Positions 48,300-64,000 of a stretch of 64,000 nt of DNA are shown here, piece by piece; the stretch's first letter is position 1, and each line of letters begins with the position of its first letter. A program made the position numbers and the translations under genes. The stretch spans positions 124,001 to 188,000 of the forward strand of contig NW_003314361.1 in assembly GCF_000143415.4 (NCBI RefSeq). Direction: 5' to 3'. The notes below the pieces were generated by a model. That model did not search any database. It was given only the letters and a program-made list of their open reading frames with translations, and was not told where the DNA came from. The stretch is from Selaginella moellendorffii. Taxonomy: Eukaryota > Plantae > Lycopodiophyta.

Positions 48300-51200
48300 A
48301 CAAGGGTCGCTTTTAGCTTATTTGTAATCTTTATTCATGAGCTTATATTATTATATTTAGCCTACTATATATATCTCTCTGAATATAATTTAGATGATGT
48401 TAAAACCATAAAACAAAATCCAAAATAATTCAAGTTGTGTTTTTCCCTTTGTGAATTTCTTGATAGTTTTGTTCTTTTTTGCAATGCTATAATGTTATCA
48501 TATATTGAATTCAATTGAATTATTACAATTTCACATAGGATTAAGATTGCACAATAATATCACAATATAATTATTATTTATTTTCTAAATATTTTTAAGT
48601 AAGCCAAAAATTATTGTACAATGTAATAATTTTTTTATTTATATAGAATATTATATTTCATTAGATTTGCAATTAATTTGTTTATCTAAATTTTCCTTTG
48701 TAGGAAGTGTATGTATTCAATCGCTTTGTTTAAAATTTCTTCGACGTAAAACTAAACAAAAGAAAGATTTTTTAGTTGTGAAACTTTTTTGGTTCTTGCC
48801 TATCTTGTTTTCATTTGGTATCAAAAGCCGAAAAACATCAAACTACCTTTCAATAGCCTCAAACGCTCTAGTGTTAATGTTACTATGAAAAAAACATTTT
48901 TTAATCTGTCAAAACTAAGTGTTATAAGTAAAAAAAATGTGTTTTTAAAAAAACTTAATTTAGTCTAAAATTTCATAAATATAATAAGGTATTTACTAAA
49001 TATTTTTATATAAAAAAAATTTAAAAATAAATTAATGTCTAGGCCAACACATCCCAAAACAATTACCAAACAACTATATAAGAAAATAAATTTATCATTT
49101 TATTCATTATCCAAAAGCTTGGGCAACAACTCAATTACACATAAATTTTATATTATACTTAGTTACGTTAAAATTTATGTTAAATTCTTTGGCGCTCTGT
49201 AATTTTATCCACACACTACTGTATCTCAAAATATTCATTTTTCTATATATCATTTCCAACCATTAAAATATTTTATATATTCTTTTGAATACTCCTTTCA
49301 ACTAAAAAATTATTAGTTTAAATTTGTCATTAACAATTCAACATTTTAAAAATTTGGCATAGTAATGGGTAAATATATGATATGCAATATTAAGACTAAA
49401 ACTTTATTTAAAATTTAAAAGTTATAATCATGAAATTAATTATTTTTAGGAAAAAAAACTAAATTCTACAATTACTTTTACTTAAAAATGGTTATAATCC
49501 TAAAAAAACTTATTTATATAAGTTAGTATTATTTCAACAACTTTTTTAAAAAACTTGATTTTAAGTTACGCACCGTGATGCAAGATATTACATGGGAAAT
49601 ATACATTACTAACATTTTACCATGGGCTCAAATTATGCGATACTTTCATCACAATGATTTAGCTTTTGGAATATTAACAACATTAGCTCTTTAATTGAAT
49701 AGTTGTGATCTTTTGTACTTTTAATTTTTTTTTTGTAATCAAGAAATTTTTGTATTTAAATTAATAATTTAAACATTCATTTATGGCAGCAATCATAAAT
49801 AACTAAATCTTTTATACTCTCACCATTTTACTACTATTATAGTTAATGAATGGAGTATACTTTTAAATTTTAAATATTTTTGTTGTGAATGAAAAGGAAA
49901 AGCCATTATTAAACAAGTGTTTAATCAAATAAAAGGTGTGTTTTTAAGAGATAAATTTTTATCTCATAATGGGGCAAATTTAAGTGTTTTCACCTTGGAA
50001 AAACAATTATACAATTGAAATAGTAAAATTAAAATCTTAGAAATTTTGAAGAGATTGAAAGAAAAGTAGTTTAATAATATAATTCATAGAGGAGTTAATT
50101 GAAGTAAAATTATGAAAATCATAAAAAAGAAGATGTGAAAATAATAAAAGCTAGTTAATAGATTGATTATTTATGTGTTTAAGACAATGAACTTGATTAA
50201 AAAACTTTATCCATAATGCTTTCTATTTTTAGAATCAATTATACTCAATTGAATTTAATTTTTATATTGTTTGAGTGAGTTTAAAATTACATTCTATTGG
50301 GAACAGTCACAAAGGAAAAATAAGTAATAGATATATTTTTTCAGTTTTATTCTTTTTCTCTTTTTATCTTCGCAATCATTTTGTAAAAGTTAAAATATTT
50401 ATAATATTGATCTTGCTCTAATAGCTAATGGTTCCAATAGATTTCAATTGCCAAAGAATTATACTAAGATTATAAACATGGATTTCAATTACCAAAGAAT
50501 TATATTAATAACAACATACATAGGATTATAAACATGGATTGGAGAGTTTTTAATATTAAAATGTAATCTTTCTTTTTAATGACATATTGGATTTTTGTTT
50601 AGAGCAATTACAAAAATGATAATTCAAATTTTAAATATGATATATTTTTACATTTTTATATAACTTTAGAGTGAACAAATAAACAATCTAAAGGCTACAT
50701 CATAAACTCATGAAAGGTTTTTTTTTTATTTGAAAGTGAATGTTAAAAAAGTTTAGGAAAAATGGTTAGATTTTATATATTAGAATTGCTCTCAAAATGG
50801 TTGTTAAAAGCTACTTTTGTTTCAAAAGTTTATTATATATGTAAGGCAAAATCATGTGTTTATTAACATTATTTGATGGGTGAAAAAATTTGTAAAATAT
50901 TTTCAATATAGAAAGTTTTAAAGTAGTTTGATTTCATTTGCTTTCTTTTATAACTCACTTGATTTTGTATAAATAAATGTTACAACTTTTCTCAATCTAA
51001 TTATATTAATAATAACCGTTAAATGTTGTTTGGATAAAATTAAGACTATACTCTTGTATACAAAGTTAAACATTTATTGAGTGATCTATTTGATTTCTGC
51101 AAGGCTTATACTTTTGTGTTGTATAAAATAAATAAGTAGCTTTCAAAAAAACTCAAAGCACTTAAAGCAATATTTTTTTACACTATATAAATGCAATCAA

Positions 51201-51850
51201 GTAAAAATTGTGGGAAAATGTTAAAGTTGGAGAGGTTGGAGTTGCAATTTATTACTATGATCACAACCTTTCAATCAAAGTGTACATTTTCAAAGTATAT
51301 TATTTATTGTTGAGGTGTGAACTAACACAATAAAAAGAGTGAGTTGTGTTTGATATACATCTCAGAGTTGAAAATCTTTGCGTGAAGGATTAGTAATGTT
51401 AGAAAATCTTGAGAAGTTTAAGGAGGTATTACTAATTATATGATTTACCACTTTGTCTAGAGTTGAGCAACATAATTGTGGTAGAGCTGATCTTTTGATA
51501 GTTAGGTTTACTCAATTATGCAAAGTTCCAAGTGTCAAATGATTGAGTGTTTACTTGAGTATGGCTTTATCAGCTAAGTACATTTAAAAACGTGTTTCAT
51601 TGCTTGCAAGAAAGCAAACATTTCTTGCTTGTTAAAAAAAAAATGGCTGGATGTGGATACTGTATCTAATATTTCTGCATCAAAGTCATGTTTCATTTTC
51701 TTCTATTTTTAAGTTGTTAGTGATTTACAACATTAAATACTTAATCATGTTAGAAAAGTATCCCTACCACATCATCCTTATCTCTCAAAGTTCAAACACA
51801 AATCCAATAGTAATAAAATGAAAAAAAAATCCCTAGGCATTTACTGCATA
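48300..51850 (+). mobile_element. Extremely AT-rich block, probably a heavily decayed Helitron Rep region
   Basis: Very AT-rich and CpG-poor with no long ORFs. Residual W(I)SITKEL..RVFNIK..ND(I) at ~50480-50600 resembles Helitron Rep W.EI..eL..DRPD..RVF..K. Local tandem duplication at 50440-50540. Confidence 0.4.
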
Positions 51851-52096
51851 TAATATATAATTACAAATGCACTAAGTGAGTATAATGCCTTCTAGATGCA
51901 ACTTGAAAATCCTGAAGCCAATTATGTTGGCCCACAGAACTAGTCTTCTTGTCAGCCCCATGTCTTCCTCACAATCACTTCTCATGCTTGGTGACAAACT
52001 CCATTTCCAATCATTTACCTGCGGCATAAGCATTTTATCCTTCACTGTTTTCTTCATTCAAAAGAAGAAAATCAATTTGCTAACCTTGTTAGGGTT

Positions 52097-55623: not shown

Positions 55624-58600
55624 ATGGAGAAATCGTGCAGCCTCTTGGTCCATTTCGACAAGAGCTCCCCCGCGCTCGCGAATGAGATCCGGGAGTCTCT
55701 GGAGAGCAATGACACGCCGCGCAAGGTGGAGGCGATGAAGAAGGCCGTCATGCTCATGCTCAATGGCGAGACCATCCCGCAGCTCTTCATCACCATTGTC
55801 CGCTACGTGCTGCCGTCCGAGGATCACACCATCCAGAAGCTGCTGCTGCTCTACCTGGAGATCATCGACAAGACGGATGCGCAAGGCAAGATCTTGCCGG
55901 AGATGATCCTCATCTGCCAGAACCTGCGCAACAATCTCCAGCATCCCAACGAGTACATCCGCGGCGTCACGCTCAGGTTCCTCTCCCGCTTGAACGAGGC
56001 GGAGCTCATCGAGCCTCTCGTCCATGCCATCGTCACCAACTTGGAGCACAGGCACCCCTTCGTCCGGAGGAACGCTATTCTCGCCGTCATGGCCATCTAC
56101 AAGCTCGCCCAAGGCGACCACTTGCTACCCGACGCTCCCGAGCTCATCGAGAAGATACTGGGCAAGGAGCAGGACCTCTCGGCCAAGAGAAACGCCTTCC
56201 TCATGCTCTGCAACTGTGCCCAGGACCGAGCCGTGAGCTTTCTCTTGACTCACGCCGAGAGTGTTCCTGGCTGGGGCGATCTCCTCCAGATGGTGGCGCT
56301 GGAGCTGATACGAAAGGTGTGCCGGGCCAACCCGGATGGCAAGGGGAAGTTCATGAAGGTGATCCTGCTGCTGCTCCAGTCACACTCGACCGCCGTCATG
56401 TACGAGTGCTCCGGAACTCTCGTCTCGCTGTCGAGCGCACCCACGGCGATCAGAGCAGCTGCCAATTGCTACTGCCAGCTCCTTCTCTCGCAGAGCGACA
56501 ACAACGTCAAGCTCATCGTCCTGGACCGGCTCCAGGAGCTCAAGGCGACGCACAGGGAGATCGTGGTGGAGCTTATCATGGATGTATTGCGGGCACTTCA
56601 GAGTCCCAACCTGGATATCCGGAGGAAGACTTTGGACATCGCGCTGGACCTCATCACCCCGAGGAACATCGAGGAGGTGGTGATGACGCTCAAGAAGGAG
56701 GTGGTGAAGACGCAGAACAAAGAGCTGGAAAAGAATGCGGAGTACAGGCAGATGTTGATCCAGGCCATACACTCGTGCGCGGTCAAGTTCCCAGAGGTTG
56801 CGAGCACAGTGGTGCACCTTCTCATGGATTTTCTGGGGGACACCAACTTGGCATCAGCTCTGGACGTTGTTTGTTTCGTGAGGGAGATCATCGAGACGAA
56901 CCCGAAGCTGCGGGAGTCTATAATCACCAGGCTTCTCGACCTCTTCTACCAGATTCCCGCCTCTCGGGTCTGCTCCTGCGCTCTGTGGATCATTGGCGAG
57001 TATTGCCAGTCGCTGCCTGAGATCGAGAGTGCCATCTCAGCCATCAAGCAGTGCCTGGGTGACCTTCCATTCTTTACGGTGGCCGAGGATGGCGAAGCAG
57101 CCGACCAGTCTTCTGCTTCAAAGGCTCCTGCTCCAACATCCAAGCAGACGACATCGGTCGGCTCCAAGCGTCCGGTCGTCCTGGCGGATGGCACTTACGC
57201 GTCTCAGACAGCTGCAGTGGAAATCGCTCTCGCAGTACCTGTATCCTTGGTTGCTGGAACCTCTACAAATCTTCGGACGCTGCTTCTCACTGGAGATTTC
57301 TTCCTCGGCTCTGTTATCTGTGGCACGCTCACAAAGCTTGTTCTTCGGCTGGAAGAGTTGCAGACATCGAAGGTGGCAGTCAACAAGGCAACTGCAGACA
57401 TTCTTCTAGTCATGGTGTCCATCCTCAGGCTCGGTCAGTCGGCGGTAGTGGCTCATCCCATTGACAACGACTCGGTGGACAGGATCACTCAGTGCATCCG
57501 AGTTCTGACGTCTCCAGACGAGGAAGCCCGTTGCATCTGGCTCGAGAAATGCAGGGCAAGCTTTGTGAAGATGATCACTGAGAAGCTCCGACGGGACTCG
57601 GAGGAGACGAGAGCCAAGGAACAGGTTGCTCGTGCTCAGCCAGACGACCTCATTGATTTCTACCACCTGAAGAGCCGAAAGGTTAGCTCTCTCCCCTCTT
57701 TCCTCTTGCACGTCTTAACTGACAACGCTCTATCGTTTTCGTTTGCCAGGGCATGAGCCAACTAGAGCTGGAAGACGAGGTTCAGACAGATCTGAAGCGA
57801 GCTACTGGAGAGTTCACCAAAGACAGCGACGACACCAAGAAGCTGAACCGAGTGCTTCAGCTCACAGGCTTCAGTGATCCCGTGTATGCGGAAGCATACG
57901 TGACGGTACACCAGTATGACATTGTGCTGGACGTGACGGTGATCAACCGGACCAAGGAGACGCTCCAGAACCTGTGCCTGGAGCTGGCAACCATGGGCGA
58001 CCTGAAGCTGGTGGAGCGGCCACAAAACTACACGCTGGCTCCCGATGCAAGCAAGCAAATCAGAGCAAACATCAAGGTTTCATCCACGGAGACGGGAGTG
58101 ATATTCGGGAACATCGTGTACGAGTCGACCAGCGCTCTGGACCGCAACGTTGTCGTCCTCAACGACATCCACATTGACATCATGGACTACATCTCGCCGG
58201 CCTCGTGCCCCGACGTTGCCTTTAGGAACATGTGGGCCGAGTTTGAATGGGAGAACAAGGTACGCGAGAGTTTTTCTCCTTGTTTTTTTCGATCGATGGT
58301 AGCACACACTCGTGTTCTTCCTGTGCAGGTTTCTATCAGCTCGAGCATAGAGGACGTGAAGCAGTTCCTGGATCACATCGTCACCTCCACAAACATGAAA
58401 TGCTTGACTCCACCGTAAGTTGTCTAGGCTAGCTCTCTGGATCGATGGAGATTCTAACAGCTTGTTTGCTACGTGTAGATCGCAACTGGATGGAGATTGT
58501 GGGTTTTTGGCAGCCAATCTCTACGCCAAGAGCGTGTTTGGAGAGGACGCGCTGGTGAATGTGAGCGTGGAGAAGATGCCCGACGGTAAGCTGAGTGGCT

Positions 58601-58677
58601 TCATCCGGATCAGGAGCAAGACCCAAGGCATTGCTCTCAGCTTGGGTGACAAGATCACGCTCAAGCAGAAAGCCTGA
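55624..58677 (+). CDS. COPB1: Coatomer subunit beta; 4 exons
   Basis: [93 protein letters not shown]. Confidence 0.97.
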
Positions 58678-58681
58678 GACT

Positions 58682-58696
58682 CGCGCGCGCGCGCGC
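58682..58696. repeat. (CG)7 alternating tract
   Basis: CGCGCGCGCGCGCGC, 4 nt after the COPB stop. Confidence 0.9.
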
Positions 58697-58802
58697 TCTC
58701 GCGAAATAAGTTTTTGTTCTTTGTAATATCAAGAGGATTGACTCATTAGGGTTTATGGTCATTCTTTGCCCTAGCTCCTAGGTTTTGCAAGGCGCGGGGA
58801 CC

Positions 58803-59948
58803 ATGGCGGACATTCTGCCCAACGAGACGATCTACATCAAGAATCTCAACAGCAAGGTGAAGAAACAGGGTGAGTCACACTCGATTTCCTGTCGCGAGCA
58901 GCCAGTGATGGATGTGTGTGGTTGCGTTTGTAGAGATGAAGAGGGCATTGCACGCGCTATTCTCTGCCTATGGCCGGATACTCGATGTGGTGGTGTGCAA
59001 GACGCCCAAGTTGCGCGGCCAAGCGTGGGTTGTCTTCAACGAAATCCCGGCTGCCACCAGCGCTCTGCGGCACATGAAGGAGTTCCAGCTCTTCGACAGG
59101 CCCATGGTACGATTTACAAAAAAAAAAAAAGAAGAATGCATTGCATGAATGTGAGCTCTCTGTTAATCCATTTCCTTTGTCTTTGTTTTTCTAGGAGCCG
59201 TGACAATGGTGAAAGGAGCATCGGCACTTGTAAGATGCATCTTCTTCTTGTGATTGCATTGCTTTTTTATTTTTATTTTCTTTCTTTCTCCGGATAGACG
59301 AGTTTGAGGAGCTCATGCTGTGGTGAAAACGTTTGTGTAGGTAATACAGTATGCCAAGTCCAAGTCCGATGCTATCATCAGCCTTACCGACGACTCGTAT
59401 GCTCCAAAGGAGAAGAGGAGAAAGACGGAAGATAAAGGAGGTAATGTTCTTCTGGTTGCCTTTTCTCCTTTTGCTTTTGCTGTGTCGTCGTGATGTCTCA
59501 TCTCTTTTCTATGTCGTTTTTTCGTGTCAGTGGACAAGAAGAGAAAGGACCAGGAGCAGCCCCAGGCAAATGGTGCCACTCCAGCACACGGTCATGTGTA
59601 TGGTGCAGCTCCGGTAAGCGCCTGGGTACTTTTAGTGTCTGTCAGCCAGGAGTACTCACCAGTTGGTTGTGGAATGCAATGCAGCCTCCTGTGAAGCCTG
59701 GGACTCAGGAGCCAAACAGCATCCTTTTCATCCAGAATCTCCCCGACGAGACCAGCGGGCCGATGCTGGAGATGCTCTTCACTCGGTACCCCGGCTTGAA
59801 GGATGTGAGGATGGTGGACGGCAGGCCCGGCATTGCCTTTGTGGAGTACTCGGACGAAGGACAGGCAACCGTGGCGTTGGAAGCGCTTCAGAGCTTCAAG
59901 ATCACTGCCAATCACGCCATGGTCATCTCGTATGCCAAGAAAGGCTGA
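58803..59948 (+). CDS. U2B'': U2 snRNP protein B'' (two RRMs); 5 exons
   Basis: [35 protein letters not shown] (U2B''-type rather than U1A KTLKHKGQAW), [33 protein letters not shown]. Confidence 0.92.
59195..59229 (+). other. Putative 35-nt poison cassette exon in U2B'' intron 2
   Basis: Polypyrimidine tract plus CTAG acceptor at 59194, in-frame GAG CCG TGA, GTAAGA donor at 59230. The intron is 234 nt, much longer than its neighbours. Confidence 0.6.
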
Positions 59949-61901
59949 GAGCTGACGAAACGCAAACGCAACCAAGTTTTGAAGGTGTCGTATCTCTCTC
60001 GCTTTTCTCTCTTTGTAGCAGTACAATGGCATAGATCTCTAACACAGGAGCGTTTTGGTTTGAGCAGCGCTACGCTAGTATTGCTATGATTGATGTGATG
60101 GTGTTTCAATCTCCCCGGAGAAAAGTTTTATTCTCGGGAGCAAAAAGAAGGGCTGGATTTTTCACGTGACTGGGAATCCAGCTTTGATATTCAAGGCTGC
60201 GTGGCTCCCATTTTCAATCTTATAAACATGCAAGCAAGTCCACTAGCGTTCTCGGCGAGTGGACTGACGTGCAAGTTGCGACCGACCCCGCGAACCTTTC
60301 GCGGCAAGAGCTTTGAGAGGTGGCTGGTTGAGAGCAGCCCAAAAACAAAGATCCAAGCGAGTCCTTGGCAGCTTCACGCAACATCCCAGAGCCATGGATT
60401 TGTTTAAGAGTGCTCATCTCGTATCCATGGAGCCGACTGGTCCCAATGCCACGGGGGATTCCAATTGAAAAACTCGAGCTTCCATTCCATTCCAAATTGC
60501 TCGTGATTCTGGGCTCGCCAAATCGCGGGCGGCCCGTAGCTCAAGCTTACCTGTTGCGTGTCGGTCGGATGGAAAGGAAATCCAATTAAAACAAGGAATG
60601 AGAGAAAGATGGTACCACACCACTCCTCCACTCAGCGACGTTGTTGCCTCCTCGTTTGTCTCAGTGAATCGATGCTAGGATTTGACGAATGGATGCTGAC
60701 ATTTTCCATCTGCCATCTTTTCCATGATGTGGAAGAAGGCATGAATCCTCCTTTCGTGCATTATTCGTGTCCTCTTTATGGTGTTTGAGGGGGCGAGCCA
60801 CAAGAGCCACCAAAGAGGAGCCCGACGGAAAAAAAGCTTACAGCGCTTGGCTGGTTGTCCCCATAGCTGCCAGTCACACAACAGAGCAACAGTGCTGCAG
60901 TAGCCATGAGTGTCCCATTTGCTCTTCTTCTTTTTCTTCCATCTCTTCCTTTACAATCGCTTTTTCTCCTTGGGTTTCTTCTGGCCTTCTTCCTCCACTG
61001 ATTGGAGCTTGTTAAGAATCTTCTCCATCCTCGCGCTCATATCTCCAGCGCCATCACTACCGAGTTAGTCCAAGTATACAGCTCCTTGGAAATTTCCTCC
61101 GCGGGCGATCTTTAAAGAATGCTTCCATGCCAAAAACTTCCAAGTCATGTCCTTCCCGGTCCTAAGTGGCGGTCGCCATCTTCTGGCCAAGCCAAAATCA
61201 AAGATCCCATTCCCATAAAGCTATGGTATAAGATATATGAAATGTCCAAGAGTTGAAACCCGTGATTTCTCTCCTTTTCTTTCCCCGGTTAGCTCTTCGT
61301 TTTGAATAATCTTTGATGCGGTCCGTATATATACAAGACGAGCGCCCCTTTGTTCTCTCGTGAGCACTCCTCTCTTTTCCTTCAACTTAACTTTGAAAGT
61401 CCTTCCTTTCATTCCCTCTTTATCTCCAAGCTTTTCATGATCCTCTAGTTTCGCGAATCGTGATCCGTCCTCTCAAGTGAATGAGTTCTAGCCTTCAATG
61501 TGATAGGAGGAAGAACAACTTGGATCTTGTTTCCAAGCATGAAACTCTGAGATTTGCGTCGCTCGTTTTCGCCGATCATTCACAGTGCTTCTGAGAGATA
61601 GTGTCAGTACTAGCCCGATCTGATCATTCTCACTCACTCATCATAGCACATGTTCTTCCCATCACTTCACGTCTTGCCTTTTGGTTCGTGATATGAAATG
61701 CTCTAACTCTTTTCTTTCCTTCTCTTGACATCTCGTTCTCTCTCGTGCAGAGAAGTGACCTGCAAGCATTGCTGTGGTTGGAATCAAGGAAGAAAAGAGA
61801 CAATCCGTGATAGTGTCAAGACAAAGAAAGCAAAGAGAAATCCCATCCCGATCGAGCGAGCAAGCAAGCAAGCAAAAGCAAAAGCAAAGCAGTGTGGCAG
61901 T

Positions 61902-64000
61902 ATGGTGCAAAAGGAAAGCCACGATCACGTCAACGACACGGACCTGGACAATGTGGAAGTCATCAGCATCAAAGACCAGGTGATCTCCCAGGCAGTGCAA
62001 CGTCCACCCGCAAAGTCGTTGCTCCAAACGTTCTCCACCACTTCCAAGGAGACGCTCTTCCCCGACGATCCGTTTCGACACTTTCGCAACAAGCCGTCGC
62101 ACCGCCAGGCCATCATGCTGATGCAATACTTTTTCCCCATTCTCGACTGGCTTCCAAAGTACAAGCTCGGCTTCCTCAAGAATGACTTCATCGCTGGCAT
62201 CACCACAGCAAGCCTGTCAATCCCCCAGGTAACTTTCCATCACGTAGCCATTCTTCCAGCTGCTAAAGAGCTTGTCACTGTCTGTCAACCGCAGGGAATC
62301 GCTTATGCCAAGCTCGCAAACTTGCCACCAGTTGTAGGACTATGTAAGTGACGTCCTTTCTCTTTGCACTGGCCCGAGTAAACTAACGCTGGAAACTTTG
62401 CTTTGAAGATTCGTGCTTTCTCCCGCCGATGGTGTATGCCATCTTTGGCAGCTCCCGGGACTTGGCCGTAGGACCAGCTGCGGTCATCTCCATTGTGCTG
62501 GGAACTCTCATCCGAGAGGACCTCGGACCCGAAGTAACGGACCCGCGAGCACACTTGAGCCTCGCTTTTACTTCCACCTTTTTTGCAGGCCTCTTCCAAT
62601 TCTCGCTGGGATTTCTCAGGTCAGCCTTCGGTTTCTCGTGTCTTTGTCTGTGCTCGAGGAACACTGCTGTAAAATTTTGTTTTGCTTGGTGGCAGGCTTG
62701 GCTTTGTCATTGACTTCCTATCGCACGCAGCGACTGTCGGGTTCGTAGCCGGGGTGGCGGTTGCTGTGTGCCTTCAGCAGATGAGAGGCATCCTCGGCAT
62801 CCAAAACTTCACCAAGAAATCGGACGTTGTCTCCGTTTTACATTCCATCTTCCGTGACCCAGCACATGTAAGGTGTCAGCTCGCCTGTCGCAATACGTCG
62901 GAAGGATGAGCCTCGAAAAAGGATATACTAGAGCAAGTACTGACGACAGCCGGCTTGTTTCGTGTTGGTATTGTGTTGGCAGTGGAACTGGCGAACCGTT
63001 GTGATTGGGATCTGCTTCCTCACCTTCCTTCTGGGAATGAGGCAAATCGTAAGTTGACAGCCAGGAAGAGAAAAGGAAAAGAAAGCTAACGACGTGGTGC
63101 TTGTCTGTGCAGAGCAAAAGGAACAAGAAACTCTTCTGGCTTTCAGCTATCGCACCTGTAACATCGGTGTTCCTGGCAACGGTGTGTGTGTTTGCAACGC
63201 ACGCCAACGAGCACCTCAGCATTGTAATCTTTTCTTTCGCTCGCTCTTGCACCGTAAGTTACTTGCTTGTTCGTAGGTAGGACAGCTCAGGAAAGGGATC
63301 AATCCTCCATCCTTCAAGGAGCTACACCTGACCGGGCCTCTGGTATCAAAGGCAATGAAAAACGGGGTCATTGTAGCAATCATCGGTCTCATGGTACGTA
63401 CCAAAGTGGCTATCACGGATCATGGTTGACTGAAGAGTTTGTGTCCACAGGAAGCTATTGCAGTGGGACGAACATTTGCATCGATCAAGAACTATCATAT
63501 CGACGGCAACAAGGAGATGATCGCTTTTGGAATGGTGAACATGACGGGGTCTTGCATGTCCTGCTACATCACGACTGGTTAGTCATGCAAGGAAAAAAAG
63601 AGAACTTACACTTCGCTGATTGATGCTGATCGATCATATAACTTCCAGGAGCAATGTCGCGAACGGCAGTGAACAACAGCGCGGGATGTAAGACGTCGCT
63701 GTCGTGCATTTTCATGGCGCTCATCGTCATGGTAACACTTCTCGCCTTGACACCGCTCTTCCACTACACGCCCAACGTCATCCTCTCTGTAATAATCTTC
63801 TCCGCTCTCATCACACTCATCGATCCCGTGGAAGCGTACCACATCTGGAAGGTTGACAAGATCGACTTTCTGGCCTGCCTGGGAGCGTTTCTCGGCGTCT
63901 GCTTCCAGTCCATTCAGCTGGGATTACTCATAGCGGTGAGTCCACCAAAAGCATGCAAAGAAGTACCATGATTTTGTGGAACTTTTAACTTCCAGGTTGC
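61902..64000 (+). CDS. SULTR: Sulfate transporter (SulP/SULTR, group 3-like); truncated by window end
   Basis: KETLFPDDPFR.F, YFFPILDW..Y, DFIAGIT.ASLSIPQ|GIAYAKLANLPPVVGL, GSSRDLAVGP, DFLSHAA, YHIDGNKEMIAFG, SRTAVN, PLFHYTPN, WKVDK.DF. Confidence 0.95.

Follow-up and report, generated by a model that had tools for sequence, protein, structure and literature searches.

Poison exons, whose inclusion brings a premature stop codon into the transcript, couple alternative splicing to nonsense-mediated decay (AS-NMD) in many splicing-factor genes, SmB/B' among them. Homeostasis through such exons has been described for the cross-regulation of U1C and U1-70K (PMC3798272) and for RBM39 (PMC10477243). 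Here we analyse a 35-nt cassette exon in intron 2 of the U2B'' gene of Selaginella moellendorffii, on a 64,000-nt stretch of contig NW_003314361.1 (positions 124,001 to 188,000 of the forward strand; hereafter the window), whose first letter is position 1 of all coordinates given below. As in the AS-NMD genes for SR proteins, U1C/U1-70K and RBM39, a short cassette lies within one intron, its premature stop precedes further exon junctions, and its use varies by sample. The exons of those genes are usually conserved over long distances and their feedback has been shown experimentally, whereas conservation here is seen between two haplotypes only and the switch is proposed from sequence and RNA contigs.

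In the U1A/U2B''/SNF family, the only feedback described is that of vertebrate U1A, which controls its own mRNA via two AUUGCA-type boxes in a 3' untranslated region (3' UTR) element, the polyadenylation-inhibition element (PIE) (PMC5071671; cited in PMC5829640). Like the PIE, whose logic is negative feedback, the Selaginella gene carries two copies of the protein's recognition heptamer in its own pre-mRNA. The PIE places two AUUG(C/U)AC boxes (AUUGCAC and AUUGUAC) in internal loops of a defined 3'-UTR stem by the poly(A) signal and blocks poly(A) polymerase, not splicing; the Selaginella boxes, in contrast, are intronic and read AUUGCAU. For tight binding, proteins of this family require the heptamer within a stem-loop of 10 nt or more, and they bind poorly to copies that are single-stranded (PMC4114683). 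Arabidopsis U1A does not bind its own RNA (PMC5829640). In the literature we found no poison cassette or splicing-based autoregulation described for any U1A/U2B''/SNF gene. The Drosophila Sex-lethal (Sxl) male exon resembles the present case in being a stop-containing exon bracketed by sites in the flanking introns, and in involving SNF, a protein of the U1A/U2B'' family (PMC2731243, PMC5488161). Unlike here, the sites are U-tracts bound by SXL, binding leads to skipping (a positive feedback), and the regulated gene is Sxl rather than snf (PMC2731243, PMC5488161).

Within plants, Arabidopsis U2B'' (At2g30260) has an isoform with a premature termination codon that arises from an alternative 5' splice site in exon 2 (-35 nt) and rises in upf1 and upf3 mutants (PMC3315328), and U2B''-LIKE is controlled by retention of intron 4 in the cold (10.1101/251876). 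According to one survey, U2B'' genes of plants show little alternative splicing (PMC9644473). The Arabidopsis genes thus share with Selaginella the gene family and an unproductive isoform, but use an alternative 5' splice site or intron-4 retention rather than a cassette in the intron that interrupts KPM|RIQYAK. We tried to map the Arabidopsis "E2 Alt5'ss(-35)" event to this same intron; the Capsella orthologue has no GT at -35, and we do not claim that the two events are the same.

The U2B'' gene and the cassette in its intron 2

The RNA data comprise Logan contigs of four runs (X1, X2, X3 and X6) from four studies; all four carry spliced contigs and are therefore RNA. The gene and the parts of its intron 2 are as follows.

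58803-59948, + strand: coding sequence (CDS) of the U2B''/U1A family, 228 aa, five exons
58803-58869, 58934-59106, 59341-59440, 59531-59613 and 59685-59948, + strand: the U2B'' exons, all junctions taken from spliced RNA contigs
59107-59340, + strand: intron 2 (234 nt, phase 0), GT..AG, between ..RPM and VIQYAK..; its productive splice joins 59105/6 to 59340/1 in X3 and X6 contigs
59107-59194, + strand: upstream sub-intron (88 nt), removed upon use of the cassette acceptor
59195-59229, + strand: cassette (poison) exon (35 nt); X1 and X2 show the joint 59229>59341, and coverage starts at 59194/5
59201-59203, + strand: in-frame TGA, third codon of the cassette (translation EP*)
59206-59208, + strand: AUG in the cassette (context gacaAUGG), two bases past the stop and in frame with exon 3
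59230-59340, + strand: downstream sub-intron (111 nt), spliced out or retained in cassette-bearing RNA
59296-59297, + strand: upstream AG, a second possible acceptor, behind the strongest pyrimidine tract

Exons were searched separately, and the public protein SELMODRAFT_236385 (P0152; S. moellendorffii, 228 aa), which is 100% identical over exon 2 and 97.7% over exon 5, was used for full-length searches. Pfam finds RRM_1 twice in the exon translations. The top PDB match is human U2B'' over its full length (E 1.5e-63), with U1A just behind (5.8e-61), and the closest annotated relatives are plant U2B'' proteins at 52-59% identity, with 80 columns invariant across the alignment. The family is marked by two RRMs with a basic linker between them, and by RNP motifs and loop 3 in RRM1, a description that the protein fits. 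By these sequence features the gene product belongs to the U1A/U2B'' family and is nearest U2B'', as an earlier note, written from the letters of this DNA, had proposed.

That note had also described an unusually long intron containing a 35-nt cassette with strong splice signals and an immediate in-frame TGA. The coordinates proved right, the stop is real, and the exon is spliced into RNA in two studies. Exon 2 ends with ..CCC ATG at 59106; the GT of intron 2 starts at 59107 and its AG ends at 59340. At 234 nt the intron is long locally, 2.6-3.7 times the RNA-confirmed introns nearby (64, 64, 90 and 71 nt). The cassette is preceded by TTTGTTTTTCTAG, a strong pyrimidine tract with the AG at 59193-94, and followed by GTAAGA; these splice sites are stronger than the outer pair, which consists of a GUACGA donor and a pyrimidine-poor acceptor. 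Read in the frame of exon 2, the cassette begins GAG CCG TGA (Glu-Pro-stop), ending the protein after residue 80 plus Glu-Pro, ahead of strand beta-4 of RRM1.

The RNA contigs leave us with high confidence that the poison exon is real. In X1 and X2, contigs join 59229 to 59341 (GT..AG, skipping 111 nt) at depths of 12.3 and 40.8, and an unspliced contig spans 59204-59369 at depths of 19.3 and 28.7, with no mismatch or gap relative to this allele. Depth in the bin 59132-59195 is 0.5 (X1) and 1.7 (X2), compared with 31.7 and 73.6 at 59196-59259; the 88-nt upstream sub-intron has therefore been removed from these RNAs, and coverage sets in at the acceptor of the cassette. Record 9 of X2 consists of 28 unplaced letters followed by 59194-59233, the geometry of a 31-mer unitig that shares 30 letters with the end of exon 2. 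Of the two junctions that the note had named as a check, 59229>59341 was thus found in X1 and X2, while 59106>59195 is deduced from the geometry of record 9, in contigs rather than reads. Genomic contamination or simple intron retention cannot yield a spliced joint together with a coverage start at 59194/5 and a nearly empty upstream half-intron, and both were rejected as sources. Contigs of X3 and X6 contain only the productive junction between exons 2 and 3. Relative to exon 2, the k-mer depth of cassette pieces is about 0.5-0.8 in X1 and X2; the contigs of X3 and X6 have none of these pieces (zero). Cassette use differs strongly between RNA data sets.

The second acceptor noticed earlier, placed at 59297, would in fact start its exon one base further on, at 59298. 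Its use does shift the frame and lead to a stop, a TAA at 59433, as had been said, but no joint to the AG at 59296-59297 occurs in the contigs of the four runs.

A stop codon upstream of exon junctions more than 50 nt away is the classic context of nonsense-mediated decay (NMD) in plants. The cassette lies internally, and its 3' and 5' splice sites function in some transcripts. Three exon junctions follow its TGA: the nearest, the cassette's own 59229|59341, is only 26 nt away, and 59440|59531 and 59613|59685 lie more than 50 nt downstream. Because the TGA precedes these three junctions, NMD is expected, and the cassette-bearing transcript would be degraded. We considered recursive, two-step removal of intron 2 and rejected it, since the exon 2-cassette junction (AUG|GAGCC) regenerates no 5' splice site; for the same reason inclusion of the cassette is terminal.

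Two bases past the stop, the AUG at 59206 opens eight codons (MVKGASAL) that end on the last base of the cassette (59229), and exon 3 continues from 59341 in its normal frame. The chance probability of an in-frame AUG in so short a space is about 0.1. Re-initiation there could give a U2B'' protein lacking RRM1 from the poisoned mRNA.

Boxes, pairing and conservation of intron 2

Sequence motifs and potential pairing arms around the cassette are listed here.

58947-58953, + strand: perfect AUUGCAC heptamer (U1-type) inside exon 2, over codons Ala-Leu-His
59128-59146, + strand: 5' arm (an A/G-rich stretch plus box 1), which pairs with either of two downstream arms
59140-59146, + strand: box 1, AUUGCAU, within AAUGCAUUGCAUG
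59235-59268, + strand: two alternative 3' arms: AUGCAUCUUCUU, adjoining the cassette donor, and box 2 together with the first part of the U-tract
59253-59259, + strand: box 2, AUUGCAU, within GAUUGCAUUGC

ATTGCAT does flank the cassette on both sides, as the earlier note had seen, and does so above chance. The boxes match six of the seven bases of the family heptamer AUUGCA(C/G), with U at position 7, and an 11-nt direct repeat ties box 2 to box 1. ATTGCA occurs 32 times on both strands of the window and 12 times on the + strand; three of these 12 fall within 313 nt of the U2B'' gene. At the window-wide frequency, two copies in 234 nt have a Poisson P of 1.7e-3, and at least two were reached in 23 of 5000 dinucleotide shuffles of the intron. 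A sequence scan of the U2B'' 3' UTR found no ATTGCA. The shorter TGCAT occurs four times in intron 2 (59137, 59142, 59236 and 59255), a count reached in one of 5000 shuffles.

Because UGCA is palindromic (AUGCAU is self-complementary), boxes 1 and 2 can pair with one another. In addition, AAGAAGAATGCA(T) at 59129-59141, purine-rich and ending in AUGCAU, is complementary to ATGCATCTTCTT at 59235-59247 with a one-base bulge. In the predicted ensemble the 5' arm pairs with 59249-59268 at a probability of about 0.42-0.45 and with 59235-59247 at about 0.39. According to this folding model, either helix would loop the cassette out. There was no Rfam match for 58700-60100 at E values up to 5 and no hit at gathering score in the window. 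A PIE homologue or an intronic microRNA was also considered and rejected, as Rfam hits in the gene region were at chance level only (MIR408 at 17.6 bits against a cut-off of 64; CrcZ; Sphinx).

A second scaffold of S. moellendorffii, GL377688.1 (GCA_000143415.2; locus L001), is 98.1% identical to window positions 55791-62959 and carries the same neighbours, a coatomer beta gene upstream and a sulfate transporter gene downstream of U2B''. Given this identity, the shared neighbour genes and the identity to SELMODRAFT_236385, its sequence marks it as the other haplotype (haplotype B), kept in the same assembly. Between the haplotypes there are no substitutions in the 234 nt of intron 2, compared with 3 in 225 nt of the other three introns and 9 in 687 nt of CDS. 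The differences within intron 2 are of tract length only (an A-tract of 13 versus 24 A, and a T-rich tract), and the cassette and both boxes are identical. This identity is weak evidence that would suggest constraint. At several positions contigs carry the haplotype B allele (59007 T, 59465 T, 59493 G, 59837 A and 60098 G); thus both alleles are expressed.

Orthologous introns were compared in Amborella, Capsella, Brachypodium and plant contigs among 80 metagenome loci, a sample with no other lycophyte. All the plant loci compared have the intron at the same position (..KPM|RIQYAK.., phase 0). Lengths and ATTGCA counts of these introns are as follows.

Amborella, 15.7 kb: nine ATTGCA
Capsella, 650 nt: no ATTGCA
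Brachypodium, 699 nt: one ATTGCA
L071 (metagenome plant contig), 600 nt: no ATTGCA
L085 (metagenome plant contig), 800 nt: no ATTGCA
L077-L081 (metagenome plant contigs), 172-173 nt: one ATTGCA, overlapping the 3' splice site (UUUAUUGCAG|)

An exon-level protein search, with exon 2 read into the intron (70 aa), returned no candidate for a closer relative, and a representative search and two full-length protein searches returned nothing above about 60-65% identity. The contigs of P0007 and P0008 are transcripts without the intron.

Explanations for the element

Intron 2 consists of a 35-nt exon set between two stretches of 88 and 111 nt, each as long as a normal Selaginella intron, and use of the acceptor at 59195 leads to Glu-Pro-stop inside RRM1 with or without removal of the downstream part. 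We consider it probable that the intron is an unproductive-splicing switch, and a regulatory role for the poison exon is likewise rather likely. Such a switch would tune the amount of U2B'', as poison exons do in many splicing-factor genes. Selaginella would recognise short introns, and the two sub-introns with the strong cassette sites would compete against the weak outer pair; for productive skipping, the GUACGA donor and the pyrimidine-poor acceptor would have to pair across the cassette. Pairing of the palindromic UGCA-containing boxes would loop the exon out and favour skipping, and a factor that occupies or melts the boxes, keeping them single-stranded, would give more inclusion. The leading candidate for this factor, unproven, would be U2B'', whose family recognises AUUGCA(C/G). 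Direct feedback by U2B'' (or U1A) through the boxes can be put forward only tentatively, as the box context is wrong for tight binding.

Several results weigh against the proposed switch, and in particular against the part given to the boxes. The repeated unit may be UGCAU rather than AUUGCA, because four TGCAT copies are rarer by shuffling than two ATTGCA. The earlier note had pictured complementary arms looping out the exon, and had cited the binding of family RRMs to AUUGCA-containing loops. The complementarity is real, with its one-base bulge, but no better than chance for so A-rich and U-rich a composition: the best duplex between the flanks has -24.9 kcal/mol against a shuffle mean of -28.3, and 81% of shuffles are at least as good. 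The fold of the whole intron has z = +0.86, and local windows have z of -0.6 to -0.9. With a positive z for the intron and a duplex weaker than the shuffle mean, a thermodynamically special structure was rejected as evidence and kept only as a possibility. Neither box sits in a hairpin loop; no local hairpin presents one in a loop of at least 10 nt, and most of their bases are paired in the ensemble. The earlier note had proposed to check orthologous introns for the exon and the boxes, and every other plant compared lacks them: the cassette with its pair of boxes occurs in none of Amborella, Capsella, Brachypodium, L071, L085 and L077-L081. Deep conservation is thus rejected for the cassette and boxes, while the intron position is kept in Amborella, Capsella, Brachypodium and the metagenome contigs; as far as can be seen from this sample without other lycophytes, the element appears lineage-specific among the plants compared. 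On the RNA side, contigs of X2 retain part of intron 1 (58891-58933) and contigs of X1 all of intron 3 (59441-59530), and both libraries may simply contain much RNA whose splicing is incomplete or poor.

Direct autoregulation would mean that free U2B'' (or U1A), present beyond the available small nuclear RNA (snRNA), binds the AUUGCAU boxes and alters inclusion, giving a negative feedback or a cross-regulation loop between U1A and U2B''. The motif was not chosen after the fact, as the boxes match six of seven bases of a heptamer defined beforehand by the gene's own product; two ATTGCA in 234 nt are unusual, exon 2 has a third and perfect copy (AUUGCAC), the two haplotypes share the boxes without any change, and vertebrate U1A, whose own mRNA is controlled through two such boxes, provides a precedent (PMC5071671; PMC5829640). 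Against this, the family binds tightly only when a hairpin loop of at least 10 nt displays the heptamer (PMC4114683), and here the boxes are mostly paired and in no hairpin; position 7 is U, not C or G; UGCAU in its four copies is the more unusual motif; plant U1A does not bind its own RNA (PMC5829640); and the orthologous introns of Capsella, Brachypodium, L071, L085 and L077-L081 have no pair of ATTGCA. The direction of the effect is also unreadable from the sequence, and Drosophila Sxl sites flanking a poison exon cause skipping and positive feedback. We regard direct autoregulation as plausible but rather unlikely. The same holds for a more specific proposal, in which binding of Selaginella U2B'' (or of U1A, its paralogue) would compete with the pairing of one box to the other and thereby set how much of its own poison exon is included. 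An equally possible, and to us equally unlikely, alternative leaves the switch in place and hands it to something else: another RNA-binding protein acting on the four UGCAU, or a temperature- or stress-sensitive pairing of the UGCA boxes, so that U2B'' output would follow a physiological signal. The four TGCAT in 234 nt (1 of 5000 shuffles), the self-complementarity of AUGCAU/UGCA with boxes that pair in the ensemble, exon use that is all or none from one study to the next, along with general intron retention within those runs, and the switch in Arabidopsis U2B''-LIKE splicing within hours of cold (10.1101/251876) fit this alternative; on the other hand, no UGCAU-binding plant factor was identified here and the structure is without statistical support.

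It is also conceivable, and in our estimate improbable, that the cassette is splicing noise, a chance AG...GT pair in a long intron taken as a cryptic exon by an organism of short introns, with waste transcripts as the product and motifs that are coincidental or remnants of a small duplication. The absence of the element outside the species in the sample compared, the 11-nt direct repeat between the boxes and the other unspliced introns in X1 and X2 are what noise would leave. Yet in two independent studies the depth of the cassette pieces is about half that of exon 2 or higher, with the caveat that contig depth is a crude measure of isoform share and contigs drop rare variants. Moreover, the outer splice sites are weaker than those of the cassette, the haplotypes do not differ by any substitution in intron 2, and splicing factors are a gene class in which such exons are usually regulatory.

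Of these explanations we prefer an unproductive-splicing switch. Core small nuclear ribonucleoprotein (snRNP) proteins need to be balanced with their snRNAs. With the poison exon found here, unproductive splicing of U2B'' is no longer confined to Arabidopsis but reaches a lycophyte. If the boxes are functional, the 234-nt intron would be a compact and easily mutated model of an snRNP protein sensing its own excess via splicing, and the same RNA motif would have been reused by convergence. If U2B'' or U1A feedback through the boxes is true, it would be the first splicing-based loop described for the U1A/U2B''/SNF family, with an origin independent of the vertebrate U1A 3'-UTR element and the same recognition heptamer. 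If the boxes are not functional, the cassette would be one more lineage-specific AS-NMD event.

Neighbouring genes and related loci

Among the related plant loci, the five metagenome contigs L077-L081 encode a protein about 75% identical to Amborella U2B''. In the orthologous intron of L077 (1115-1287) and of L078-L081 (about 2051-2223), a U2-type heptamer, AUUGCAG, lies over the 3' splice site, in two different sequence versions. The gene models of P0001 (Amborella AMTRI_Chr08g165870) and P0003 are irregular at KPM|RIQYAK, with 45 extra residues or read-through into the intron. A Logan plant transcript (L088, positions 101-848) encodes a U1A/U2B''-like protein with a frame break in the A-run of the linker (REKKK..), due either to an error of assembly or to a genuine frameshift isoform.

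Upstream of U2B'', the stop codon of the coatomer beta gene lies only about 125 nt from the U2B'' start (window 58677-58803). This interval includes a (GC)n tract (58686-58700), and RNA contigs from the two genes meet at 58682/58684. Within the coatomer beta gene, contigs of X2 and X6 join 58411 to 58479 with GCC between, and those of X1 and X3 use a GT..AG intron at 58415-58478. The 58411/58479 joint is probably an allelic donor difference rather than alternative splicing. Further upstream, at window positions 48300-51900, there is a sharply bounded AT-rich island of about 3.5 kb, with 20-28% GC against about 50% around it and no tandem repeats.

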